Source: Trichosphaerium sp. ATCC 40318 | Taxonomy: Eukaryota > Protista > Tubulinea | Length of the DNA: 64,000 bases | Assembly: GCA_038496445.1 (NCBI GenBank) | Contig: JALMLS010000344.1 | Location: forward strand, 248,001 to 312,000 | Direction: 5' to 3' | Shown: piece after piece, positions 1 to 61,300 of the stretch | Layout: every line of letters begins with the position of its first letter | How positions within the stretch are numbered: position 1 is the stretch's first letter | The notes under the pieces: model-generated | Told to the model about the DNA's origin: nothing | Seen by the model: the letters and a program-made list of their open reading frames with translations, nothing else | The model's database searches: none | Position numbers and translations under genes: made by a program

Positions 1-2530
<2,530 letters not shown>

Positions 2531-9459: not shown

Positions 9460-11990
9460 ATGTTGGGTTACCGGCTTTCTCGTGGCAGCCGAAGGCTAAC
9501 TACGCGAAAACAGTGCTCACAAGCTTTTGTAAAGGCTGTACTTCACGTACGCCACAAGTCTACACGATCAAGACAAGAAACACGAAAGGATAAAGCCACG
9601 GATGCAGAGATTGACGAACGCATTGTAAAAGAGACAGATGAGAGTATGAAATCACCTTGGCCAAAACCCAAAATACCAGAAGCGGTAGACGAGGAGGAGC
9701 CTAAGGAGTCACCATTGGCTGACATGTATGAAACAATGGGTTTGGGTGCGTTTTCTCACTGATTTGCTTCAAGTACGTAATTAACGCGTAGAAACGAACC
9801 TGAAGCCCAAAGGGAAGAACCAGCACCCTAGAAGCATGCTTGGAAAGGAGGTTACAGGATCTTTGACAGACAAACTGTCAACCCTGTCACATAGCGAAGC
9901 CGTATATATGAGCTTGAATCCCCAACCGCATAAGCTATCAGAAGACATTGCAAATGGTACCAAATTGTTTTTATTTGTCTTGTGACACTAACCGCTATCT
10001 CAGCGCCTATTCTCGCCTCAACGTTTATGGAAGAAATGCCAGTTGATAAATATGTCGTTGAAACAGTTGAACGTAAATTTGATATTGAAGAAGAAAGCTT
10101 ACAAGATTTTTTCCAATACAGAGGACGGTATGCTTTTTTTTTTAATTTTTTTTACAGCGTAGGTATGCCACTGAAAGTACTCACAACCTCTCTAGTGATG
10201 CCAAAAACTACACACGTTTTATTAGAGGCCAATCAGAACGAGGAAAGTACGCGTTTGATGCCATTGAAGACATGAAGGTAAACAAGAAAACTTTGCTTGT
10301 CATATTTTTTTCGAAAGTGCTTTTTTATTTTTGGTAAATCAGTTGCTAATATTCCTTCTTAGTTGCGCGGTATTAAGCGTAGAGTGCAACATTATACATC
10401 TTTAATGTATGCCTCAACAAAAAACGGAGAACCAAACCAAGCATTCGATATAATGGATAAGATGAAGCGTGATGGATTAGCACCTAACGTCTATTGTTAT
10501 GACATTGCTATCAATGCTTGTATAGCTGGTACGTTTTCAAAAACTTTTTTTTTACATTTCTGAGAAATGATCTAATACATCACAGCAAATCAACTCGATC
10601 GTGCTTTCTTTGTTGTAAATGCTATGATAAAAGAAGGTGTAGCATTGACACCTGTACCCTTTGCTTCACTTATCCGTGGATGTGTTGCTGAGGAAGATTA
10701 TCAACGTGCTTGGGAGACATATGAGCACATGTCAGTTTGGCATTGTAGTCCTGATCAAGTAGTTTATGCACTTATGATTCGTATTTGTGGTAAGCAAAAG
10801 AGACAAGAGAAAGCATTACAATTGTTCGATGTTATGCGCGAAATGAAAGTGTGGCCTGATGCTCACTGCTTTGATGCACTTCTTAATACATTGGATACTT
10901 GGGAACACTGCAAAGAAGCTTGGAATATTATGGAGACAATGAAGGAAGAGGGTTTCACACCTTCGTACTGGTCCATGATTGCTTTCATGAAAGCAGTAGC
11001 TAAAAGTGGTGATGTAAAGACTGCTGAACTTATGTACGATGAAATCATGCAAATGCCAGAAGCACAAAAACATGATCATGTACCTACTACATTGATGATA
11101 GCGTATTCAAATGCATTCAAGTACGGTTTACTTGTTACTCTTGTTGCTCAATCCACTAACATTTGTGTTTCAATAGGATAGAACCAAAGAAGCAAGAAGA
11201 TTACATTGCTAGAACTGAGACAGTCTTTGAACGATTACGAGACTCAGGACAGAAGATTACGATTCATGCTATGAACGCACGCCTGCGTGTATACACAGAA
11301 GCATATTGGCTTGATGACATGCTGGATGTTTTTAATGAATATGAGAAATATGGTATGTCACGTGACAAATCATGTGTTTTTATTTTTCTTTCGGTTGTAC
11401 TAATAGTTTTGTGATAGGTTTGAAGCATAATGTATCAACTTACAATGAACTTATTAAAGCATTTATGTGGTGTAAAGTTTGGGACAGAGGATTCGATATG
11501 TTTAATTATTTGAAAGCTGCAGGTGAGTTACTTTCTTAAAGACTGTTTACGTACTAATCACTGTACTATAGGCTTGGAACCTAATGAGCGTACGTACTGG
11601 TTCATGGTAGAGGGATGTACACGTACAAGACACTTGCAGAGTGCCATAAAGATTCTAGAAGAAATGCGTGCTAAAAAATTATATCCAAACTTTAGTAATA
11701 GATATGTAAAGAACCTAAGAGGTGTAGTCAAGAAATGGCCTGATTTACGTCTCAAGGTACTGACCTCTAGAATATATTTCTTGGTTTTTTTTTCTTTCTG
11801 TTCTACTCGGAGAACTAACGTTGTTATAAAGGTGGATGAGTTGACGTACAGGGTACACTTGGGTATACCTAGTTGGACCAAGCCTGGTCGTGGACGACAA
11901 ACAAGAAGTGAGTATCGTGAAGTTACCAAAGAAGAGTATATCAAACATCCTGAACCTCATTGGGATCAAGTTGCGAATACCATGCCCTGA
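9460..11990 (+). CDS. Pentatricopeptide-repeat (PPR) protein, probably mitochondrial
   Basis: Arg/Ser-rich N-terminal presequence (MLGYRLSRGSRRLTTRKQ) and repeated 35-aa motifs such as PNVYCYDIAINAC, PDQVVYALMIRICG, PNERTYWFMVEGC. Confidence 0.9.
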
Positions 11991-14912: not shown

Positions 14913-16994
14913 TTATGTATTTGTTGGCGAAGCACAAATTCCGTCATGATTTATATTATCAAACACCATAGCATAAGCGCGTTTGAATTCATACTGAACA
15001 ACGACCAAACTATGTTCATCTACATTCTTTGCCAAATTATGTGTCACCTTTTCGAAAAAAAAACATTTAGTTGCACTCACTACAAATAGGGAAACGTGTA
15101 AAATAGTGAACCAATTACGTACCTCAAAGGGATCTTCAACTGTTAAAACATAATGTAATTTCTCTTCACCTCTATCAACAGTCCAACCTTTCTCCATTTT
15201 ACTCAATAAACCACCTGTCCTTACAGATACAACACTTTGTGTATAATCAAATTCGTATCCATAATACTTAAAGAAACCAACCAATAATTTACCAAGAGAC
15301 TCAGTGTTTGTACCCAATAGACGCTTCATTGATTTTAAATCATTGTAATATGAGCAATCATATCCATTAATTCTTAATGGTGTCTGATCTTTCTTATTAA
15401 AAGCTTGTAGGCAAGGTAAAACTGGAGAGTTTCTTTGTTGTAAGTAATTAATAAGCATCATTATAAGGCAATAAGAAGACAATGTCCCTTCAAAAGTACT
15501 ATTAATGCTACGTGCTTTTGCCCAGTATTTTACAAAGTAAGCTAAAGATAATCAGTTACTGTAAAACACAAAGTCGAAGAAAACTCGTTTGGATTTCTAG
15601 AAAAAAGCTCGAACAACCAAATTAGGCTAATACACGTGTACTGCGTATACCGAAGATGGATTGTAACAAAAAAATGTACAATGAGCAACAGGTGAGTGTA
15701 AATTCTTGTTTTCGTTACGTACCAAGTTGCTGGGCACGTTCATCAAGTTGCATATAATCTCTTACTAGTTGTGTATTGTAAACTGCAAGCTCATTGTTTA
15801 AGCTCACGTCGCATTTTAAATTAGTGTCTCTATCTGTAAATTTAACTATAGGTATTCTTGCTCTATACAAATCCATCAAACTCATTACCGACTCCTCTAC
15901 ACCACGTTAGAATCACAACAGGAGAAAAAAAAAACAAAAATAGTACGTACCCTCCTGCATGCGTTCAGCAACATCATGTATTATTGTAGGGTATTCATCA
16001 GGTGTTGCACTGCGCATTATAACGGTAACATCTAGTAAAATGTCAAACTTGAAAAAAAAAGCAACCAAGCGTCTTCGTTGCCAAGAACACTGAGTTGTCA
16101 CCAAAAAAATGACTTGCCTAAATCTGAATTATGCATTCCTAAGTTTGACGCAGTTGACCCAAATTGCTTGACTTGTGGCTCCCTATTACCATACCATAAT
16201 GTCATCCATTCTTGAAGCTTCGAAAGTAATTGATAGCGACAAGCATCGTCATGCGCACTTGATTTTCTAGTATTGAAAACACGCTCAATCTGGCATGTCA
16301 AGTGAATTAATGTTACTGGATCAACGGCAATAGCAGTGCTAGGACGATCCCAACGCCTTGGGATCCATCCTCCAGCACGTACGCGGTCTTGAACAGTTTG
16401 TAGAGCACCTCTTCCTCTACCTTTTGTGGGTCGGTAGAAATCATTTACGAGTCCCCGATTAGGATCCCATTTCAACGGTAGCTTAGACTGACTTCGCTGA
16501 CGCGAATGCTTTGATTTAGCTGGAGGTGGTGTTGCTGCGTTGCATGACACTGATCGTTGGCGCCTATTTTGCTGCTCAGGCTTCTCTGGAGGTAGGTCGA
16601 ATTGTGGGAGTGGCTTTGGTGCCTTTGTACAGGTTTTGCTTAAAGTAGTAGCATTGTTTGTTGCGCTAGTGTTACTTATCGCTGTTTTCGCGCCAAGTTG
16701 CTTATTTACAGGGCTAGAAGATGATTTGGCTACATAATTGTTTTTAGGCTGCTGTAATTCGTTATTTGATGCCGGCAGTGCGTCAAACAGTGTGAAAACG
16801 CTGTCGCAATGCTCCAAAGCTTCGCGTGGTTGGAGTGAATGTAAATTACTTTTAACAGATCCACTAGAGCACGAGCGAGGCCACAGTACGAATTCATGGC
16901 GTTGCCGCCTGTCAATTGGATTGCATGGAGGTAAGATAGCTTGAGATCCCCAGAGTTTAAACGTAGCCTCTGGTCCATTAGATATATCTGACAT
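14913..16994 (-). CDS. Cid1/TUT-family non-canonical nucleotidyltransferase (likely terminal uridylyltransferase)
   Basis: FGSTASNLGMHNSDLD (GS..DxD), ARIPIVKF, CDVSLNN, YFVKYWAK, LSSYCLIMM, and the nucleotide-recognition motif VEDPFEVTHNLA with the UTP-selecting His. Confidence 0.9.
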
Positions 16995-17177
16995 GTAGTG
17001 TGAACTAGTTCTCTTAGAGGTAAAATGACCAAAACAGAAAAAACGTTCAGAATTCTTCGTTGGCGGTTTTTTTTTTACCACTAACTGCTGTGATAATAGC
17101 ACATCATTTTTAGGTTAATTTTATTTACATCTTTAGAATACAGACTAATTCTGGGCTGTTGGCTTCTTACTAAACTT

Positions 17178-27927: not shown

Positions 27928-29636
27928 ATGGCGTTGAGGTACGATCTATTTTAATACGCTATTAACGCCTACTAGCCAAAGCCAACAAACAAAATGGCCC
28001 ATTGAGGTTTCTGCATTCTATGCTACGTTGTCTGACTATTTGTAGTTGTTTGGAGCTAAGAAGAAATGGTACAAACGGTGTTTAACACTTATAGACAGTG
28101 TGTTTATAATTAGCGATGCTGAGGTATGTTCATTATCAGAACCAACCATTTTGACGGTGCAAAATGAATTTTCTAACCAGCCAAAGGATAATAATGAGGT
28201 GTGCAAAATTAACTTGCAGTTTGTAGATGTACGTACTGTTGCGCCAATAATATCTAAACCGCTTGACAGAAACACGTTTTTAACAAACAACTCAGACACA
28301 TAAGTATAAAATACTTTGAAGAAGGTACGCTAACATGCCTTGTAACAATCTCATGTAGCGCTTAGATGGAACTACTTCAAAGTGCTTTATTCGCGTAGCG
28401 ACTAAAGAGCAAGGAGACGAGATAATTAGTGTTATTGTTGCAAACAGTTCTGACATGAACAAAAAAAATTTGAAGTATCAAGTAAAATCGCTTCAAGAGC
28501 AAGTGAAAAGCACTGAAAACTTAGTAGCAGAAATAGCGAGATTAAAGGCAGCGAACAAGGAGTTGGCTGAATCCGTACGTAGCCAACCATTGCCTACACC
28601 CCCGCCCAAAGCTACTTCTGGTGGTATGACACGATCACAATCTGCCAACTTTAAACCTACCGTACCCAAGAAAAGCCTTAAGATGTCTAGAAGAGCCCTT
28701 CCTAAGAAAGCGATTGTACCTCCAAAACGAAGTGCCTCTACTATTCCTAAACGAAATGTAAGAAAGTCAAACAAAGGCTTACCTACACCACCGCTAAAGA
28801 AGAGACATGTGAAACGAGAACGTAAACCTGTACCACTACCAACAGCCCCGAAAGCAAGAAAGAACCAGCCACCAGTGCCAATTGCCAAGAAACCAAAACG
28901 TACCAACGTTCCACCTAAAAAGCCTCACACAGTAGATTTCAACGAAGAAAACATTATCCTCGCTAGTTCTGTATCTGAGTTACGCCAACAACTTGCCAGA
29001 AAGGAAGCAGAAATTATAGCTCTTAATGCATTGCAAGCAGAAGGTTTACTCTATCGCAAACAAGCACAACAACTCAAAGCTGAAAATGAAAAGCTACGCG
29101 CTTCTCAGATTAATGCAGCAGAATTAGAACATCGTGTTAAACAATTAACTGCTGATAATGCAGCAGCAAATTCTCAAAGGGCTGAACTGACAGAACTTGA
29201 AAATGAAGTATTGAAACTAAGAGCATCTAATAGCAAGCTCCAAGCGGATCTTACAGCTGCGACAAAGTTAAAGAATCAGCTCACTGAGTTGAATGAAAAT
29301 AAGCATGCAACTCTTACATCGATGCAATCTGAGACATTTATACTTAAAACTCAAGTTAGGAGATTAACGAAAGAAAATGAACAACTAAAGGCTGCTAACG
29401 CACCTCCACCTAATACCGGACCACCAAAAATACCAGAGCGTAATTATAATTACAATAACGCAAAGCTCACAGCTTTTACCGCCACGCCATCACCTAATGA
29501 CGAAAAAATTTCTGCCCTTCAAGAAGAAAATAAGAAATTGAAAGAACAATTAGCTGGAGTGCCAGGATTAAAAGCAACCATTTCTCAGTTGACAGAAAAG
29601 AATGACAATCTTAACTTCTTGTTAGGATTGCAATAA
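27928..29636 (+). CDS. PH-like domain + proline/lysine-rich + coiled-coil protein (cytoskeletal/signalling adaptor)
   Basis: Short 5' exons give LFGAKKKWYKRCLTLIDSVFII...CFIRVATKEQGDEIISVI (PH-like); a 1.2-kb terminal exon has PxxP motifs and long heptad repeats. Confidence 0.72.
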
Positions 29637-29871
29637 ACGAAAGAAATAATTGTACAATATATTGTACACAGTCGTAGCATCTGATTGATTGCAAGAAGAA
29701 AGTGACTATGCTGACCCCTCAGTGCAATTTGGCTAAAATTGAGAGCAAGACGGTCTCGTTTGGTCTTTAACTGCTTTATTTTTATCTGTTTGATCAAAAC
29801 ACAGCCCAGCCGGAACGTACGTAGCCCCTATCATTGCATTTTTATCGTAAAGGACTCCAGAAGCTTTGGGC

Positions 29872-31062
29872 ATGTCTAGAGAAGGTGCTTGATCAAATAA
29901 ACAAATAAATAGTGTAGCGTAGTGTAGTTAGCACACCCAACAACAATTTAAGAGACTATCGACGTAGGTTCTCCCAGACGTAGGAGGACAAAAAGACCAA
30001 TGTCTAAAACCAAAACGCTATGGAAGCGTTCTAAAAAAACACTTTATGGCTGCCAAAACCTAAAGTACGCTTCCGATTTTATCCGGCGCAGCTGTAGCTT
30101 TTTTTAATGATACATACATAACCATTCGCATAGAGAAGCTATAAAACTCCCAGAGAGGGAAGATCTAAACGAATGGCTCGCTGTACGTATTGCAACTTGC
30201 GTATTAAAACGCCAAGCGACTATTGCATTGCTCTGAGCATTTCTAATATTAAGTAGGTGAATACCACCGATTGCTTTAGGCAGTTAAATTTGTTATACGG
30301 TAGCATTACTGAGTTTTGCACGCCTGCTCTGTTTCCAGTAATGGTACGTACCTGAAAGGCTTTGTAATAAAGCTCGTCTGTATCGATTTTTATTTTGAGT
30401 AGTTTTCCTTCCTTTCAAAGCCAAATAAGCCATAAGAATCCGTCAAAGTTAATTTGTGTGCGACTGACACTTGCAGGCCGATTTCTTTTTATCTAAATTT
30501 TTTTTTGAAACTATTTATTACTGACGCTACTCCGCAGAATGCAGGCCGCTTTGAATTTAGATGGGTGCCTTTTTCTGAGGATCCAGATAAGAAACAAAAA
30601 GCTGTTAAATTGTCAGCACCTCAGTACATCGATAATTTTATCACGTGGGTACGTAATAGGTTTTATTTCGGAAACAAAAAAAAACAACTTGACACGTTTT
30701 CTTGACACTTATCCTTTACTCAATAGTTACAAGACACACAACAAAATGAGAATGTTTTCCCTGTTAATAAGAATCAGAACTTCCCAGCGACGTTCCTCCT
30801 TTACATCAAGTTTGCATTTAAGCAAATGCTACGCATTTATGCACATATTTATTACGAGCACTTCGAAAAGATATTGAAACTTGGTGAAGAGCCACATTTG
30901 AACACTTGCTTTCTCCACTTTTACTATCTATGCACTGAATTCTCGCTTGTTAAAGAAGAATACTTCAAGCCACTAGAAGGACTTGTTGAAAACCTAGAAG
31001 AAGGATTCAAACTTCATGCTAGACGTGACCGTCACAAGAAAGAAAAGAGCAGAGGCCATTAA
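29872..31062 (+). CDS. mob1: MOB1-family kinase activator
   Basis: EAIKLPEGEDLNEWLAVNT, LLYGSITEFCT, LSAPQYI, FPVN, RIYAHIYYEHF, EEPHLNTCFLHF. Start codon uncertain. Confidence 0.9.
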
Positions 31063-43100: not shown

Positions 43101-46100
43101 AGTTAAAGCAGGGTTTCTGGATAGAAAGTTTTCAAAATGTAACCTACCTGCTGTGTATAAAGCTCCAGAGCGTAGTCATACAAAGCCATCAACAAAAATG
43201 GACGTCTTCAGGTACGTTGAATAGACCCTTAGCTTCCTCTTCTACAATATTATTAATCTTGCGTGCAGTTTTGGTATTCTGTTGATAGAACTATTAACAT
43301 GGAAAAAACCATGGGAGGGCGTTAGTGATGAAGAGATATTACGGCGTCAAAAAAACAATGAAATACCAGAACTACCTTCTTATATTGATGAAGATCTCAA
43401 AACACTCATAGAGAGTATGTGTCAGTAGCAACTTCACCAGTTTTCTTTAATCTTTCAAATAGGATGTCTAGATGTAAAACCAAAACAAAGACCTTCATTT
43501 GATGGGATACTTGCAGCTTTAATGGATGTATCATGTAAACTAGTTGCTAAGAATTATGTAAACCAAATTGTTTTTCATTCCAAAGCTACTATAAGCACAA
43601 CGTATGTAATAGTTATTCCCTGGATACACGGCACAATCTCGATCAATTTTTGTGTACTTGTAACTCTAACGTATTTAATTGTTTGCAGGATGATGAGTTT
43701 GAGTTCAATGAAGTTACCACAAAAACTATATGGACGTCATAAGATCTTGCATCATATATTTAGTCTATTTGATCATGCAGTTGCTGGAGATGTTGGTATT
43801 TGTATTATAGATGCTTTTCCAGGAATGGGTAAATCTCTTTTGTTACAAACCATAAACGACGTACGGCATCCAAAACGAAAGAATTTTGATAATCATGTTT
43901 GACTTTGTATTTGTAGCTCTTTACGCCTATGGCCGGTGTGTCATGTGTAGGGCATTATGGTAAAGAGATATCAGGCCTAGAAAATAATAGTACTGGCGTT
44001 ATATATGCTTTAAGGTAAGTTCTAGATTACGATAATAGAAATGTCACAATGTTGATGCTTTTATAGACAAACTATCAAAGCAAGATTGGCGACTCAAACT
44101 CCCGAAGAAAAAAATGGTTGGCGGAACGCTTTGTTGTACTTGTTTGAAGAACAAGAACTTATTGTATTGCGTCATATGATACCAGAGTTGGAAACTGGTA
44201 TTTTCACTGGTGTACGTCCATCAACGTCTAGTGGGTTTGTTTTTAAAACTAAGTTGATTTTTTAGCCTGAAGTTGTTGATGTTGATGACATGTCTCTCAC
44301 CGTGAGAACAAACTCTAGTAGTACAGAAACTTGGGAAGACAGACCAGGGACATCATTTGACCTCATGCGAAGTCTTTTGATACGGCTTATAGCTAAACTC
44401 ATAGCTACAGGTCAGCCGGATCAAAAAATATATTCAGTAACATACTCACGTTGTTTGATAGAGCATCGACCACTTACTTTGCTTCTTGATTCTGTTGAAC
44501 AGATTGATGACGGTTCTTTACAACTTTTAACAGAGCTTGTTACTGATGAAGATGTGGGTAATCTATTTGTTGTACTTGCTTGTAGAGAGAGCGGTAAAAG
44601 CCAAGAAGAATTAGCTGTATATGTGCGTTCTACAATCTGCTTTTGTGCTTTTTTGTAGTGACTGTTGTAGGCTGCTTTGAAAGCTCTTGAAAAGAAATTT
44701 GCATCAAAGAGACACCGCGCGATTTCGCGTTATTCTCTACAACCATTACAAGTTGATGATGTAGCTTGTTTACTATCAGACTACTCCAGTCGTCCGAAAG
44801 AGGATGTAATGGAGCTAGCCAAGATAGTAACAGGTTAGTTATACCACGCTTGATGTTAAGCTAACGACTGCTTTTAGATAGAGCCCTAGGAAATCCTGAG
44901 CTGACTCACGAGTTCATACAACACTTGTGTTTCCAGCGTACTATTAATCAGTCTTCTGATGGAAAATGGGAATGGGATACGTCTAAAATACAGAACGTTG
45001 TAGTGAACGCAGATAAAATTATCTCTATGAAACTATCAGTAAGGAAACACGTTTTCTCGTTTTTTTCCTAACTTGCTAAATTTTATAGAAACTCCCTGAA
45101 GATGTAGTTAGTAACTTGTTACTAATGAGTTTCTTTGACGATGTTTGTCAAGTATCACATCTTGTTGGTTTAAGCCACATTAGTATATCCTTGACATCGG
45201 TATGTACTTTTCTTCGCTCCAAGGTGCACTTCAAATAACTTGTTTTTAAGGATCGTAAGATAACTTATGATATAACCAAACCTCCATGTTTGAGTAGTAT
45301 ACAATCAGCAATAACGGATCTAAAAGAAGATCTGGAACATGCAAGCTTGATAGGATTTATTGATATAAAAGAGAATACTGTTGAATTTTCTAAACAAAAA
45401 ATTCAAGAAACTTTGTATGGACTGTTCACAAAGAAGCATCGAGCAAAAATACATCTTGAAATAGGAGAAGTACTTGAGAAGCTTAGAGGTAGTTGTGGTA
45501 AACAACGCCGAAAGTATGAACGTATGCTCCAGTTCAGAGCACTATTGCGCAGTTTTTTTTAATCAAGTATTTAGCACTCCCCTATCACCTCTCCGTTAGT
45601 CACCTCAACAAAGGAAGTTCCTTGTTCTCACCAGAAAAGAAACTAGAGCTTGCTGAGATAAACTACAAGTGTGCCTTGAGAGCCGCTAAGACCAGTGCAC
45701 ATACAACTGCTAATCATCATTTTTTGTTTGCTCTCGAGTTGATTAATCTTGCGGAAAGTAGTACGAACCGTTGATGCTATTCTATCTCATTTCTTTTAGC
45801 ATCTGCTTGGAAAAAGAATTTCACCTTACTTTGGAACATCCATAACGCTCTATTTGATTGCCAAATGAAGCTTGGTCAAGTGATACAGGTAGAACAAAGA
45901 AACCAACTTTTACGGCTAAACATTTTCTAGGCAAAAGAAACAGCAAGGATATTAGTTAAGCGAGCTTCAACTAAGTCTCAAATAGCACGAGGATATTTAA
46001 ACAAAGCACGATTGTTTCAATACAAACCAGATCCCGAAGTACGCTCATGGTTAATTCATACAACATTGTTAAATGGCATTAGACTTTCGACATTGGATGT

Positions 46101-49768: not shown

Positions 49769-52700
49769 TCAATCGTAGTCTGGTTTTACTGCTACCCATC
49801 CTCCATTTGATTGTGGTGGCGATTTTGGTTTGTCTAACGGTTTTTGTGAGTCTCCTGAATCATTTATTGCCGTGCCTAGCAATGGTTGCTTCAATGAGGG
49901 CTCGTTTATGTCTTTCAAAGACATTGAATTTGTGTTAATTAGTGCTGCTCCATTTCCATTTGATGTATTCTTCCATAGAGCCCTCTCTGCAGGTACTTCA
50001 TCTTTTAATTCGTCTTTTTCTTCATCATCTAGTTTAACTCCATTGTCTTTATCATACTTCATAAACACTACATATGTCGGTAGAACTTGAGCTTCTAAAA
50101 AGAAAGAAAATTATCACAAGTGAATGGAAAACAACTATTTACTAGAAATAATGGTTGGTGACAAGTTGCATAAACGAAGAAAATATAACTTGCCTTGGAA
50201 GATAACAAATTCAGTTGTAAAGTAAGCTGGTCTACTCTTTCTTCGTTTCCTCTTTGGTTCTTTGTACGGAAGCCCTTTCTTATCAACTAACACATTACAG
50301 TTAATATCTACTAAATCATTAAAGGTAAGCTAGTACCAAGTACGAAGTGACTCTGGTAACCAGGTTTTCCAGGCTAATAAAAAAAATCAGTTTTTAGAAA
50401 GTTACAAAAATTAAGAATGGTTTACTTGTCCTTTCAGGCTATTTTCTGATGAATGCGGATGCTCAATAGTTGGGTATACATTACCTTAGGAATAGAATAA
50501 GTACTATACAGAGTTGTAGAGGCTTACCAGGAGCAGCAAATGCTATAATTATAGGTACTTCTCCATCATTATTTCTTCTCGCATATTTTGTAGCATACTT
50601 CATATCTGACGTGAAGTACATACCTTCACAGTTTTAACATTTTGTTCGTTTTTGATTACCAGCCATGCACTTACCTTGCCCATAGAATCCATCATCTAAA
50701 CGTTATGAGTACGTTGTAGTAAGGAAATACGAATTAGAACTTACCTACTTGAGCCACAGTACCAAAACCGGAACCACAGATCTGTTGAACAAAACGATAA
50801 GTTTTGGAGTCTAGAGAAAAATATGGCTTCTATTTTTACCTTCCAACACGTGTTTTCATCTGTACCATGTAGTACTGGCATTACAGGCATACTCTTAGGT
50901 TCTTTCCTCTCTTCATTCCACACAAACTCATTTGTGTACTTTTGGTATTGCTCATACACAAAATCACGTGCTTTCCTGTCTTCATCGTCCTAAAACATTT
51001 GTTTATTACATACCAAGAATAAAACTAGTCATAGGTCATAAAGCTGTTATGTATTACCCGTTGCCATTCTTTTGTATTGAAGATAGAGCTACTAAATAGG
51101 GAGAAAAGTTAATGTGAATACAAAAGAAAAGCTGCTTTTGTTTTATCGTGCCTTGATTGCCATTTGTTTAGAATTGTTTGAATAGCACTTCCAAACTGTA
51201 AAGATAGACTCTTATTATGTATTTGATACGCTCGTGATATATACATGCCATCACTTAACGATAGTTAAACAGAAAACCGTTCAAAATGAAAAAGAAGCTT
51301 AACAAAAAACGACTTAACAACTCAACACGTACGGCTTCATGTGATTCACAATATTCTTACACCTTTCATATTCTTTCCCAGTTTTCGATTTGGCTTTAAA
51401 AAATATGTATTAGATAAACCATGTGGCTGTAAACGAGTACAGAAATAAACATCTAAAAATAAACTTACGTTTCAACGCAATCATCTTGTAGTCTGGTCTT
51501 TCATCCCAATCCATTTCTCTGTCAGGCATCCATGGTTCTGAACCGTATTCACCTGTTTACATGGCATTAATACTACGACAAAAGGCAGTACTTAAAACAT
51601 GTTGTAACAAAACGAACGCCTGTAAAAAAAAAGTGATAGAAAAGTGTATACCTGCAAGTTTCTTTTGTTGGTCAGCGATTCTTTGTGCAAATCTTTTCCT
51701 TGATCTTATTCTATAAAATATAAAGATACCAATAAAAAGGATAGATAATATCAAAGTAGCAGTCAGAGGTAACCCGATGTACAACACCCATTCTACAAAG
51801 AAAAAAAGAGTTAAATAAAGAAAAACAGTTGACAACAAATATGTCTTACTTATCCAGTCAGTACAAAACAGGCAGTTGGGTTTCTTGTATTTAAAAGTTA
51901 AGCAGTCGGGATCCTATACTACTATTAAATTAAAGCCAAAAAAATAACAAGCTACTGGTGTTTTTAATTCCTTCGTTCTTCATTGAATACTTACTTCACA
52001 CCATGAACGATAATCTTCAATAGGTTCAGCGATATAAGTGCCTTTACCTCCTGGGTTACAGCAATGATTAGGTCCTCCATCAGATCCAAACCAGTTTTCG
52101 GCTTTATAAGTCAGCGGTGTGTCACGTGATGTTTGTCGAAAAATAACCAAATGATTTTACCTGCGTTTATACCAATACAAGAATCTTCAAGTTTACCAAC
52201 ACTCCATTGATCAGCGTCCTTTTTTCTTGCGTTAACATATTGTACACCAATGACACCAGGAAATTCATACCATAAAAGCGTTCATGTGAATATTAATATT
52301 GTCGCACGTGTACTTTCCATTACCAGGTCTTTTTAAAGATAAGAAAAAGGAAGTCGTAGATTATAAAAAACGCTCCGCTGTTCCCAGCGTGATAAAAACA
52401 AGTTTATTCCCTCATTTTCAAATCGTATGCACTTCCATGAGGGATTATGCACAGTACCGACAGTTGGAAAAAAAAAAGAAAAGAAAAAAAAAAGAGAACA
52501 TACCTTGAAAACATAATCATTGCGTATGTATCCTCTGCAGTGTTCGTATACTTTGAGAATGTATTATGAGTTATAGTAATATTCGCCAAAATAGACACCT
52601 TTGTACCAGGTGTAAGCACAAAAAAGAAGCTATTAGTATAATTTTAAGAACGTACAGGATCAATAGCACTCGTTGGAGAAAAAAATATAGATGCAGGTTG

Positions 52701-54084
52701 TTGAACACCGACAAAATTGAGGGACCCAAAGTTTGTGAATGTATTATTCATCACTTTAATATTTTTCACATCTCCTTGTAAATACATACCCTAGTGACAA
52801 AGCATAAGCCATTAAAATAGACAATAAATTACATACACTTTGTTCGAACTCGTTGTTGATAAACTCGGAGTCACTAAAGTAATCAAGACGTAACGCGCCA
52901 CCGTTTAAGAACTTTGAGTTTTTGACAATTATACCACCAAATGATGTACCACGCTCTGCGTGTACTTCCAACACAGGTGTAGGAAACCGAGCTTAAAGTT
53001 GTCAACAAAACAAACGAAAAAAATTGTCACGTGATAAAGTGATTTTCCATATTCTGTTATTGATTGATTTAAAACACAGTACCATTGCCTTGGGCCGTGA
53101 TATTATCGAATATGAGTTTTCCACCTTCTGTTTTACCATCAAGAGAAAACCACATCGCTCCACCACTTATGATAAAAGCGTTTGACCTGAAAAAACAATC
53201 CCTTCAAAAAAGTCGTTAGTTTTATTTCAAAAAAAGATAAACTATGTCTTACCGAAAGACTACGCCTGGAGAGTAAATTGTGACATCTTTTATCTTTATA
53301 CAATCCGATGAGCTGTCTTTGGTTTGATCAAAATCACAATTCTCGAAAATAACGCTTTGTAGTTTCCCATAGAGGTTAACAAGCTACAAGATAAATTATA
53401 AATATTCCTGTGTTTATTCCAACAACATACCTTTTGACCTATTAAAGAAGTGGTTAGCTATGTTGCTTAAAACAACACAAGAGTTTTCGTACTTTTAAAA
53501 TTAACTTCTGAAACAAGAAGTGTAAACACGTGAATATCATTAACATCTCCAGCTTTGTTCCGAATATTAGCACTACTTTCTAAAAAAAAATTGACTCGTC
53601 TTACCTCTTAGCGTTGCTTGGAGTGTTGGCCTTGCATGCCCAGGGACATTTGTAATGGATATGTTGTTCGTAGCGCCTCGCAAATCGAACTCACCTGAAA
53701 GCAGAGTGAGTCAAACACGAAGCTTGAGAAAAATAAAAAAAAGATATTCGTTTTTACCTGTTTGGGCAATATATGTTCCAGGGAATAACAGCACGTGATT
53801 TATTGTATTATTTACATCTAAGAAATAACGTTATAAAGTGATTAAGATCAAATAAAACCCAAAAGCTTGCGAACCAGCCTCAATAGCGTCCTTTGCTTCA
53901 TCAAGTGTTCCAAATGGATTTGCTTCGCTTCCATCACCCTTTGAGCCTTCTTTAATGTATATAGATTTCATGTAGCATACGCTAGTGGTAATGTTAAACA
54001 TATAACCGTCATCTCGCATAATTACGCGCACTTCAAAAGAAGAACACAGCAAACCAAAATGATGCGCATTCTACGTGTGTTCAT
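49769..54084 (-). CDS. Type I transmembrane protein: signal peptide, pectin-lyase-like beta-helix ectodomain, TM, cytosolic PARP-like ADP-ribosyltransferase domain
   Basis: Signal peptide MNTRRMRIILVCCVLLL; GDGSEANPFGTLDEA; ENWFGSADGGP; TM WVLYIGLPLTATLILSILFIGIFIFY-RIRSRKR; ART motifs LHGT, GFYGQGMYFTSDMKYATKY, GYQSHFV, TEFVIFQEAQVLPTYVV. Confidence 0.85.
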
Positions 54085-58337: not shown

Positions 58338-61300
58338 CTATGACGACACTCCAAGCTTTTTAGCAGATATAGGGCTTGATAAACTTTCTCTATTGCTCTC
58401 ATTAATAGTAAACTGCTCAAGCACAGACTAACATTGTAGGTAAGCACATACGTCAACAAACAAAGAAGAAGGTAACAATATCAAAACAAAAAATTATCGT
58501 TACAATTTTTTTTTCCAATCGTACCGATGCGTCTAATCCTGTAAGGTGACAAACCTTAGATTTAAGCCTGAAGTAGGATGACTCAAGTTCGTTTTGTAGT
58601 ATGAGTTGTTCTGGTCCGATCAAGTCTGCATTAAGAGATACAGCGAGACTTAATAGTTTCAAAAACGCAATGAACTCCTTTTTGAGCTGTTCTCTATGGT
58701 TTTCATCGTACTTGGAGCGATTATCGCCCAAGAACGATTCTAGTATCTCCTCAGGTCCCTTATTAACCTCTATACCATATATGAGAACACTGCATTTAGA
58801 AATAAAATAGTAGAGCCGTACGCAAGAGTAGAGCGCCTTGGAGTTGTCTTTGAAGTGTTTTGGAGTTTGCTCCAATAGAATTCACTAAAACGATTGTTAT
58901 GATCTATTGATACCGTTCTAGACAATAGCGTACACTCTGTTTGTAATCCTTGGCGTTGTCCTTGAATAATCTCAGTAGCATTTTCGATAGGCGTTAGTTC
59001 GATCTTTAAACATAGAGGTTAGGTGAAGAAGTACAATATGTAAAAAAAGCTAAAGTGCCACACGCACCTGTTCTTTAGAGACAACCTTTAGCCTTTTCTT
59101 CAAATAAGGGAATGCATACACAGTTGTGAGTATAGTCTTTCTCTGCCATAAAGCAGTGATATCCTCAGAATCGAACTTTTTACCAGATTTGGTGAAAGGA
59201 GTTGCATAAATAAATTTGACTACAAGCAAAAAAAAATTAGCAAAAAAGTTTACGTTGTGCACAAGAGCTTTCACGTTCGACTAAGGCACTTGTTCCAAAT
59301 AAAATATTCAAAGATTGTCGTACCAATATTATTGTTAAGTTCAAATAATGAAATTCTTTTCTCTCCAGGCTCTTCTTCATGGAATACTTCAACTGAGATA
59401 ATTTGAATGTACAAATGATTTTCATCCTTGATTTGATCTTTGACAGGTTTAAGATTAGATAGCTTGTGTATCTAAACAACAATGTAAGAATGTACAGGCT
59501 TTATATAACCAAGACGCAAAAGCGTTTTGTCATGACATACCTTATCAGCGCCGAATTCATCCTTGAACTGAGAGAGGAGGCGATTGGTAAACTCTGCAAC
59601 CATGGTGATTCCTTTTTCTTTGTAAATGTACTCGTTGCCAGAAAGCTCCTAAAAGAAAGCCATTAGAACTGTCAATAATATAAGCTTTTAGCTGTTGATA
59701 GACGTACAGAAATGAGATTTCCAAAGAAAGCTACACGATAGTAACGACCGAAAATCCTAAAATCACAAAATTACAACCAAAAAACTTTAAGTTTTGTTTT
59801 TAAGTTACCTTTGGCTTGCAGCTTGATCCTCTACGATCTGTTGACACAAAACGTGACATTGAGAGTGACACTAAATATTGATTTAGAGTAAAGCAAGATA
59901 AAGCTATTGAAATGAGTGTTCAGTACCTCTCCCATGCGCCTGTAATCTCTGGAGTGCTGGTACACTGGAAGCAACAATCTGTATACTTCAACACACGCTT
60001 CGTACATGTGTCCCATTTTTAGTTGTTGGATACTGTTCTTCATCATTAACGCAAAACCTTCTTCCGTAAATACAGAACCCTACAAAGAATAAGTTATAAA
60101 GTACAAAATCTTCAGCAGATTTTCGCCATGGCGAAGCGTTTTTCTTCAATCAATATAAACAAACGCACCTGACAGATATCGTTTTCAATCGCTTTGAGCG
60201 ATTCAAGAGAAGGAAGCGTGCATGCTTTATCAATGTTAGGGAATACGAAGTTATATCTGATTCCTTTAAGTTCGTCTGGAAGCCTTCCAAGAAGTTCCAA
60301 ATATCCAGAAACCAAGGCAGCAATAAGGACATTTGTTTGAGCTGCTTCCTCAAAGTTCTTTTTCTAAAACAATAAAGGTCATTTCAAAGCCTTCACGTTT
60401 ATCAAGCTAAGTGGGTTTGTACCGTAAAATGGAACCTAGCTAGTGTCTGCAACCACGTAATACGTAGGTCCGGACTGCCAACGAAACCCTTGGAGATCTG
60501 GAAGTAGAGATCTGCTTTTGTTTCAGGATCGAAACTGTACTTGTGCATTTTTTGAGCGTCACGAATAACCTACGACGGTAGTTAGATCGTTTATGCAGTA
60601 TTTGTAAAAAGCGTGCCCCAAATAGTAGGTTGATGAGTTCTTGGACTTGTTTACCAAGAGCAGTTCCTGAAGCTGTTCGTTGAATAAAGTTTGCCATACA
60701 ATGATGAGAAACAGATTCCAAAGTAGTCTGTAGTGAAGCAAAGACGTTCTTTACGCTTCCTCTCTTCGTGCCAGGTGTGCTTGGCGTGCCCTCTGTTTGT
60801 TCATCAAGTTCACCACACATTTTTGAAATGGCTATAGTGCTCTGCAATCGAGTACGAGAGAAGTTACCAGACTCTTCAAAGTTATTCTAAAAGTGATTAG
60901 TTTTATACCAAAAATTAAATAATCAAATTCTTACCTTTATGAGGAAGATTAATACCGCTGCAGCCTGGCTTCTAGTTTGGAAGCATTTGGCATTACAATG
61001 ACGAACAATTTCGTAAGTTAAATCACCACAGATTGTGTTTTTATAGGTGAAGAGAGGCTTCTTAAATTCAGGAATCAAATATTTCAGCGCATGAAACACT
61101 TTCGTCAAAACATCAGTACATGGATCACTCTTTAGTATACTGATAATGGTCTAACAAGCATAAAAATAAGTAAAAATAATACAGTGAGAACCATTCAAAA
61201 ACGAAACAACCAGAACTAATAGAAGCAAAAGCAACGTACATGCCAAACTTTCTCAAAAAAGCGTGATGTTTCTTTAGTCAAATCAGAGGTATAATGATCT

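Follow-up and report, generated by a model that had tools for sequence, protein, structure and literature searches.

A receptor-like ADP-ribosyltransferase gene of a marine microbial eukaryote and its modular environmental relatives

ADP-ribosylation by enzymes of the PARP family is known as a nuclear, cytosolic or endoplasmic reticulum-anchored modification. To our knowledge, no receptor that signals across a membrane through its own cytosolic ADP-ribosyltransferase (ART) has been characterised. Here, we describe a gene in 64,000 nucleotides (nt) of DNA from Trichosphaerium sp. ATCC 40318 (contig JALMLS010000344.1, positions 248,001 to 312,000; this whole stretch is referred to as the window). 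Its product is very probably a type I single-pass membrane protein, in which a signal-peptide-like start and an ectodomain are followed by one transmembrane helix and a cytosolic ART domain of the PARP type.

Members of the PARP family that are associated with membranes have been described before. PARP16 is a membrane-anchored mono-ADP-ribosyltransferase with a C-terminal transmembrane segment, and a PARP12-like protein of the sponge Amphimedon has an N-terminal transmembrane segment followed by the PARP domain (Perina et al. 2014, PMC4245714). In a single line, the same survey also notes transmembrane and lectin domains in clade-3 PARPs of Rhizaria. These transmembrane clade-3 PARPs are probably the same phenomenon as the family described below. 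They are given one sentence each in that survey, without architecture, family, topology or function.

No description or characterisation of a receptor-like PARP came up in full-text literature searches, and a search for Roco–PARP fusions found none. According to the initial annotation of this locus, no characterised type I receptor was known to have its PARP domain in the cytosol. The literature searches agree with this, although the mention of transmembrane clade-3 PARPs in 2014 (PMC4245714) qualifies it.

Gene structure and protein topology

A single, expressed gene of a marine microbial eukaryote spans the region from 54084 to 49769. Its ectodomain and ART are encoded on one mRNA, because two open reading frames (ORFs) from MMETSP transcriptomes thread exactly across the whole region. 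For this threading, each protein was laid codon by codon on the genomic minus strand, and only GT/GC...AG introns were allowed. P0001 (Transcript_12998, labelled ‘type:complete’) comprises 832 amino acids (aa) in 29 exons separated by 28 introns, and P0020 (Transcript_12997, from the same cluster) comprises 846 aa in 28 exons and 27 introns. Both thread at 100% residue identity from an ATG at 54084-54082 to a TGA at 49771-49769, with an in-frame stop (TAG) two codons before the ATG. The two differ only in the last intron (42 nt, GC-AG, in frame; 49875-49834), which is retained in P0020 and adds 14 residues to a disordered C-terminal tail. Whole-protein analyses were run on the public ORF P0001. 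No paralogue of the gene occurs in the window, where it is present as a single copy.

P0001 was also returned when the 50-residue exon carrying the catalytic His (50989-50840) was searched in a representative library of 1.84 billion proteins, with identity at 50/50 residues. The same search gave two short true relatives, P0005 and P0007. Four other matches to the exon (P0002-P0004 and P0006) are repeat proteins with WW or SdrD_B domains, and were dropped as spurious. Single exons were otherwise poorly informative: among 20 stop-free minus-strand pieces compared with Pfam, only the piece with the GMYF motif matched, and weakly (PARP, E 0.038; ART-PolyVal, E 0.028). Nothing above noise was obtained when one exon was compared with the PDB.

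A single spliced frame had been proposed from the genomic letters, and the transcripts bear it out. The proposed start, stop and triad codons were right, and all the features that had been named, namely the motifs, the transmembrane segment, the RIRSRKR stretch and the His, Tyr and Glu codons, lie in the window where they had been placed. What the proposed splice model missed was an 8-nt micro-exon (exon 6) and exons 18-20. The micro-exon is flanked by introns of 54 and 47 nt. Exons of P0001 measure 8-219 nt and introns 42-175 nt (median 57), with a G+C content of 0.384 in exons and 0.305 in introns.

Most of the P0001 introns (25/28) are GT-AG, and the remaining 3/28 are GC-AG. For none of the three GC donors does any shift of the boundary yield a canonical GT-AG intron. 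One of these introns, intron 27, follows the TEFVIFQ stretch that carries the catalytic Glu, and the Glu motif had been predicted to depend on it. It is indeed used, because both transcript ORFs thread with it and no shift to GT is possible. The contigs of relatives carry the same motif as a continuous sequence without an intron. GC-AG introns usually make up roughly 1% of introns in eukaryotes. Their share here, ~11% of 28 introns, is far above that level and may be a property of the source genome.

The order of signal-peptide-like start, ectodomain, single transmembrane helix and cytosolic domain was part of the original proposal, and hydropathy, charge and AlphaFold2 (AF2) models all agree with it. 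The first 20 residues contain three Arg followed by a 10-residue hydrophobic core in the hydropathy window, and AF2 predicts a helix over residues 2-27. The transmembrane segment lies within a predicted helix at 432-482, where the predicted local distance difference test score (pLDDT) is 76-80 over the membrane-spanning residues 441-460. The net charge is +3 before the segment and +5 in the 15 residues after it. The C-terminal tail is hydrophilic.

The cytosolic module and its relatives

The assignment of the cytosolic domain to the PARP family of ARTs is supported by Pfam, by profile comparison with solved structures and by the predicted fold. P0001 matches the Pfam PARP catalytic domain at E 2.3e-14. 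As a single sequence it finds solved structures only weakly, with PARP10, PARP13, PARP15 and PARP12 at E of at least 0.017. A profile built from ten domain-only relatives finds PARP13/ZAP at E 3.6e-7, followed by PARP12 and PARP10. The initial annotation had called for modelling of this domain as a check, and it does model as an ART: with a 14-row alignment, AF2 places residues ~500-755 at a pLDDT of 80-90. Foldseek matches this model, at E ~1e-8, to PARP13 (template-modelling score to target 0.82-0.83), PARP12 (0.74), PARP10 (0.71), PARP4 and PARP1. Viral PARP-like proteins, including one from an invertebrate iridovirus, are also among the fold matches. In the prediction, the PARP-type fold of the module includes a helical insertion and, at its N-terminal end, a beta-alpha element. 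The module is kept as a unit in receptor-like relatives.

The His-Tyr-Glu (H-Y-E) triad is intact, as had been claimed. In the alignment, the LHGT, GQGMYF and EFVIF motifs of P0001 fall on the corresponding motifs of PARP10, and Glu733 aligns opposite the Ile of the PARP10 IFVIF motif. Short relatives keep the His in 11/13, the Tyr in 13/13 and the Glu in 12/13 cases. Among environmental loci whose alignment covers the position, the triad is invariant (His 75/75, Tyr 76/76, Glu 78/78). The HG[ST] and G-x-G-x-YF motifs are kept in relatives alongside the triad, and a conserved GYQSH motif is particular to the family to which P0001 belongs. By sequence and model, the module is nearest to the clade-3 mono-ART PARPs, yet it keeps the catalytic Glu. 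The H-Y-E triad is required for poly-ADP-ribosylation, but is no proof of it. Mono-ADP-ribosylation is the safer guess, because the module has a compact core without a PARP1-type helical domain.

Relatives are abundant in environmental sequence data. Metagenome contigs scanned with a profile of short, domain-only relatives (profile A3) yielded 80 loci with uninterrupted matches, from 26 sample prefixes, and the ART domain is present in 78 of these. In 43/78 loci, a strongly hydrophobic segment precedes the ART core by 93-143 residues (median 114), and the corresponding distance in P0001 is 119. Where an ORF has at least 220 residues of upstream sequence, the transmembrane segment is present at this distance in 38/39 cases. 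Mean net charge in the relatives is -1.0 before this segment and +1.2 after it. Fourteen ORFs are complete with a signal-peptide-like start. In these, the transmembrane segment begins at residue 476-1779, leaving ectodomains of ~460-1,760 aa.

The ectodomains of these relatives are highly varied. Pfam comparison of 15 long ORFs identified leucine-rich repeats (LRR, including the ComC type), Ca-binding EGF/cEGF, DUF4215, CUB, fn2 and FXa-type EGF domains, while 2/15 have no recognisable ectodomain. The P0001 cytosolic part, from about residue 495, is 30-37% identical in BLASTP to the 78 environmental ORFs, and the match starts ~35-60 aa after their transmembrane segment. Because this part is shared while the P0001 ectodomain is unrelated to those of the relatives, P0001 is, as judged by sequence comparison, part of a large and uncharacterised family of modular build, which pairs a constant cytosolic ART with variable ectodomains. 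A search for such relatives had been recommended at the outset, and the 78 loci, with their LRR, EGF, CUB and other ectodomains, are what it found. At four loci (L049, L051, L029 and L031), a second long ORF on the same strand abuts or overlaps the start of the ORF for the transmembrane segment and ART. The true proteins there are probably longer, and are split where a frame change or a short intron intervenes.

The ART module also occurs in soluble proteins. A search with the ART region found Roc-COR(+PH)-ART proteins, one zf-UBR-ART protein, tandem ART proteins and one protein of Arcella intermedia, and none of these soluble relatives has a transmembrane segment adjoining the ART domain. In P0009, P0013, P0015, P0016, P0018 and P0019, the ART lies C-terminal to Roc-COR (in some together with PH), at the place where Roco proteins usually carry a kinase. 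The occurrence of the same module behind Roc-COR supports the idea of the ART as a signalling output. P0012 joins the ART to a zf-UBR domain. P0008 and P0009 have two tandem ART copies, the first of which has lost its His, and Gln or Asn replaces the triad His in some soluble relatives.

Two relatives with a signal peptide, LRR, EGF, transmembrane segment and ART lie on two metagenome contigs (L035:2143-5121, Ga0315291_10011065; L043:4069-6549, SDBT01012009.1). Both contigs are AT-rich (G+C 34%), and their genes are intronless, densely packed and located on both strands. The neighbours include small ankyrin-repeat ORFs, a 2-oxoglutarate-Fe(II) oxygenase and a poxvirus-type poly(A) polymerase regulatory subunit / methyltransferase (PF01358). 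These contigs look like giant viruses of protists. The location of the relatives on giant-virus-like contigs, beside ankyrin-repeat genes, suggests host–virus exchange of receptor-like ART genes.

The ectodomain and other features of the window

The ectodomain of P0001 was initially described as a pectin-lyase-like beta-helix, with the motif GDGSEANPFGT (exon 2) at its start and NWFGSDGGP (exon 14) at its end. This description is not established: it draws on a post hoc motif, models of medium to low confidence and non-significant fold matches. The motif, a rung-like h-x-h-x-N/D/H-N/C/S-x-F, occurs at residues 137, 167, 199, 230, 272 and 313, with two looser copies (eight by eye). The six regular-expression matches compare with 0.42 in shuffled sequences, for a motif that was picked after inspection. 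Autocorrelation of the ectodomain sequence gave no clean repeat period.

Two AF2 models are all-beta, with short strands in repeated groups, at a pLDDT of 50-75 over residues ~170-300 and lower elsewhere. Foldseek on the single-sequence AF2 model, in which the ART part is unfolded, gave top PDB matches that are nearly all right-handed beta-helices, and all non-significant (E 0.26-2.8, template-modelling score at most 0.28). They comprise tailspikes, PL6 lyases, RbmB, PfbA, chondroitinase B and pectin methylesterase. A right-handed parallel beta-helix is plausible for the ectodomain, but only suggested, and a glycan as its ligand is unsupported.

Sequence searches add little to this. No Pfam, NCBIfam or PHROG family matches the ectodomain at a meaningful E-value, either in exon pieces or in the whole protein, and the N-terminal cap has a weak match (E 0.081) to a PHROG ‘hydrolase’. 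A search for ectodomain homologues (residues 20-435; candidates of 458-1456 aa) returned P0001 alone, a metagenome scan with the whole of P0001 returned nothing, and comparing the ectodomain with the 80 environmental ORFs by BLASTP gave no match. The ectodomain contains five N-x-S/T sequons for N-glycosylation and 11 Cys, eight of which lie in the last ~65 residues before the transmembrane segment. In the favoured reading it can be glycosylated and is stabilised by its cysteines.

The window itself is eukaryotic nuclear DNA with a G+C content of ~37%, and contains no tRNA genes or Rfam families. Its exact match to MMETSP transcripts points to a marine protist grown in culture for that project, and no feature hints at human DNA. 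Several exon-sized ORFs encode recognisable domains (Table 1), but the neighbouring ORFs provide no informative context for the ART gene. The longest uninterrupted ORF in the window (28455-29636, plus strand, 393 aa) has no meaningful Pfam match and no identical product on record. The AT skew around it is unusually high (0.21 for 28001-30000).

Table 1. Positions of the receptor-like ART gene, its parts and other recognisable domains in the window
Feature	Position	Strand	Basis or remark
Whole coding region	49769..54084	-	Two MMETSP transcript ORFs thread onto it with every residue matched
Signal-peptide-like N-terminus, aa 1-20	53975..54084	-	Spans exon 1, 50-nt intron 1 and start of exon 2
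Ectodomain, aa 21-434 (414 aa)	51791..53974	-	Between signal-peptide-like start and transmembrane helix
8-nt micro-exon (exon 6), in ectodomain coding part	53431..53438	-	Needed for both ORFs to thread
Single transmembrane helix, W435-Y460	51713..51790	-	Hydropathy 2.5 over 19 aa; AF2 helix
Stop-transfer RIRSRKR, aa 461-467	51692..51712	-	Directly after transmembrane helix
Cytosolic ART module, aa ~495-755, exons 17-28	50045..51511	-	AF2, Foldseek, BLASTP
PF00644 (PARP catalytic domain) stretch, aa 595-751	50057..50929	-	Pfam, 53.8 bits against a cut-off of 26.7
His615 codon CAT, LHGT motif	50867..50869	-	Alignment to PARP10 and relatives
Tyr646 codon TAC, GQGMYF motif	50616..50618	-	Alignment to PARP10 and relatives
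Glu733 codon GAA, TEFVIF motif	50210..50212	-	Alignment to PARP10 and relatives
GC-AG introns of the gene	51092-51151, 50095-50193, 49834-49875	-	Donors GCACGA, GCAAGT, GCACGG
GC-AG intron 27, 99 nt, donor GCAAGT	50095..50193	-	Joins TEFVIFQ/Glu motif to last beta strands of ART fold
C-terminal tail, aa 756-832	49772..50044	-	Predicted disordered (AF2); holds 42-nt GC-AG intron
RecQ RQC domain	1816-2250	+	Exon-sized ORF
PPR repeats	10624-11990	+	Exon-sized ORF
Cid1-type poly(A) polymerase / terminal uridylyltransferase	14913-17102	-	Exon-sized ORF
AAA_16 ATPase piece	44290-44655	+	Exon-sized ORF; strand converging on 3' end of ART gene
DOCK DHR-2 lobe C	58453-58875	-	Exon-sized ORF

Possible mechanism and comparison with known systems

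By analogy with receptor kinases, we lean towards a mechanism in which the ectodomain would bind an external ligand, and clustering or a conformational change of the receptor would control the ART. The ART would then use NAD+ to ADP-ribosylate the receptor itself or membrane-proximal substrates, probably by mono-ADP-ribosylation. It would thus act as a signalling output, in the place held by the kinase in receptor kinases and Roco kinases. Taken as a whole, we consider this chain somewhat better than an even bet. We infer catalysis, its mono- or poly- character, the ligand, the regulation and the cellular location, which might be the plasma membrane or an endosomal or phagosomal one.

Several points weigh against this mechanism. 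Activity requires the H-Y-E triad but is not guaranteed by it (PARP3/PARP4), and the equivalent of the nicotinamide-binding Ser of PARP1 (the Ser904 position) is not clearly conserved in the family alignment. The ectodomain is without a significant relative or fold match in the searches above, so that binding of a ligand has to be assumed; the LRR, EGF and CUB ectodomains of relatives lend it indirect support. Hydropathy was the only basis for the signal peptide, although even with an uncleaved N-terminal signal anchor the ART would face the cytosol and the ectodomain the lumen or the outside. Among the relatives, the positive-inside bias is moderate, 29/42 being more positive after the transmembrane segment than before it. 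Lastly, the environmental set was drawn with two peptide patterns from one subfamily, and its proportions consequently describe the sample and are no census.

The mechanism has a more specific form, in which the protein serves as an immune or conflict receptor. Its ectodomain would sense a pattern of a microbe, prey or virus, and its ART would modify factors of the invader or the host, or consume NAD+ locally. The closest solved relatives, PARP13/ZAP, PARP12 and PARP10, speak for this form, since PARP13/ZAP and PARP12 are antiviral PARPs. So does the combination of a constant output module with greatly varying ectodomains, as is typical of recognition families that diversify. Further support comes from the relatives on two giant-virus-like contigs beside ankyrin-repeat genes, and from the viral PARP-like proteins among the fold matches. 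However, there is one copy only in the 64-kb window, and the homologue search found no close paralogue of the ectodomain. We give this form a modest chance. It is fairly unlikely that the protein is instead an ART anchored in the membrane whose beta-helix serves as a polysaccharide lyase, hydrolase or adhesin of the surface or phagosome. In that case the ART would be constitutively active, and the transmembrane helix would be an anchor and not a relay of signals. The top fold matches are nearly all polysaccharide lyases, depolymerases and tailspikes, with one adhesin, and the ‘hydrolase’ match at the N-terminal cap points the same way. PARP16 also provides a precedent for a membrane-anchored mono-ART (PMC4245714). 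Yet these fold matches are non-significant, no catalytic residues can be assigned, and most relatives carry binding modules of the LRR/EGF type, not enzymes.

Doubts of two further kinds concern the ART domain and the gene itself. The PARP-like module could be a pseudo-enzyme scaffold that binds NAD+, ADP-ribose or a partner without transfer, like PARP13 and other inactive PARP domains. In its favour, the inactive domain of PARP13 matches the module best in structure, the residue at the Ser904-equivalent position varies, and the triad His is replaced in some soluble relatives. On the other hand, essentially all receptor-type relatives keep His, Tyr and Glu together with the HG[ST] and G-x-G-x-YF motifs. 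This is the pattern predicted by purifying selection on catalysis, which makes a pseudo-enzyme very unlikely. The transcript ORFs come from short-read assemblies, which can produce chimeras, and were threaded as protein, not as transcript nucleotides. Two neighbouring genes might thus have been fused by transcript assembly or by the splicing model. Both isoforms, however, read through exons 15-17 in frame with canonical splice sites, and the same linkage and spacing of transmembrane segment and ART occurs, without introns, in 38/39 independent environmental ORFs. Because this linkage recurs independently in the relatives, a fusion artefact is practically excluded.

Beyond this locus, receptor ADP-ribosyltransferases may constitute a widespread and uncharacterised class of cell-surface receptor in microbial eukaryotes, also found on giant-virus-like contigs, in which an H-Y-E domain of the PARP type replaces the kinase. 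Roc-COR-ART proteins would be the soluble counterpart of Roco kinases. We put forward this generalisation tentatively, and rate it below even chances. If it is true, transmembrane signalling by ADP-ribosylation would be an invention parallel to receptor phosphorylation. The locus provides a transcript-verified example, and its environmental relatives show that this is no one-off fusion. It opens the testable question of whether ADP-ribosylation does in some protists what receptor kinases do in animals and plants, and the giant-virus-like contigs point to exchange of receptor-like ARTs between hosts and viruses.

The closest solved relatives of the P0001 module are the clade-3 PARPs (human PARP10, PARP12, PARP13/ZAP, PARP14 and PARP15), with which it shares a compact ART core that lacks the PARP1-type helical domain. 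The human proteins are, however, soluble, and carry macro, WWE, CCCH or RRM domains. None of these domains is present in P0001, in which Pfam finds only PARP at E≤10. At the third triad position, human clade-3 PARPs have Ile, Leu, Tyr or Val, and the P0001 family keeps Glu. This family also differs in having its own conserved N-terminal element, helical insertion and GYQSH motif.

Among membrane-associated enzymes, PARP16 is similar in that a PARP-family ART is held at a membrane by one transmembrane helix, with the catalytic domain in the cytosol. Its helix is C-terminal, and it has neither an ectodomain nor a signal peptide. In P0001, the helix precedes the ART and follows a 414-aa ectodomain. 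A tail-anchored reading of the PARP16 type was rejected, as the helix of P0001 is at the opposite end. The ecto-ARTs (ARTC), which are anchored by glycosylphosphatidylinositol or secreted, are likewise membrane-associated ADP-ribosyltransferases. Their catalytic domain is extracellular and belongs to the R-S-E, cholera-toxin-like class. An ecto-ART reading was rejected as well, since the P0001 domain is of the H-Y-E, PARP type and lies on the cytosolic side of the transmembrane helix.

The functional analogues of the P0001 family are receptor kinases, receptor guanylyl cyclases and Roco kinases. The resemblance lies in a variable LRR/EGF ectodomain, a single transmembrane segment and a constant enzymatic output, and in the presence of the output domain behind Roc-COR. 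In contrast to the kinases and cyclases, to which there is no homology, the output of the P0001 family is an NAD+-dependent ART fold. Transmembrane clade-3 PARPs had previously been noticed in passing; what is new here is the family, its topology and its receptor-type ectodomains.

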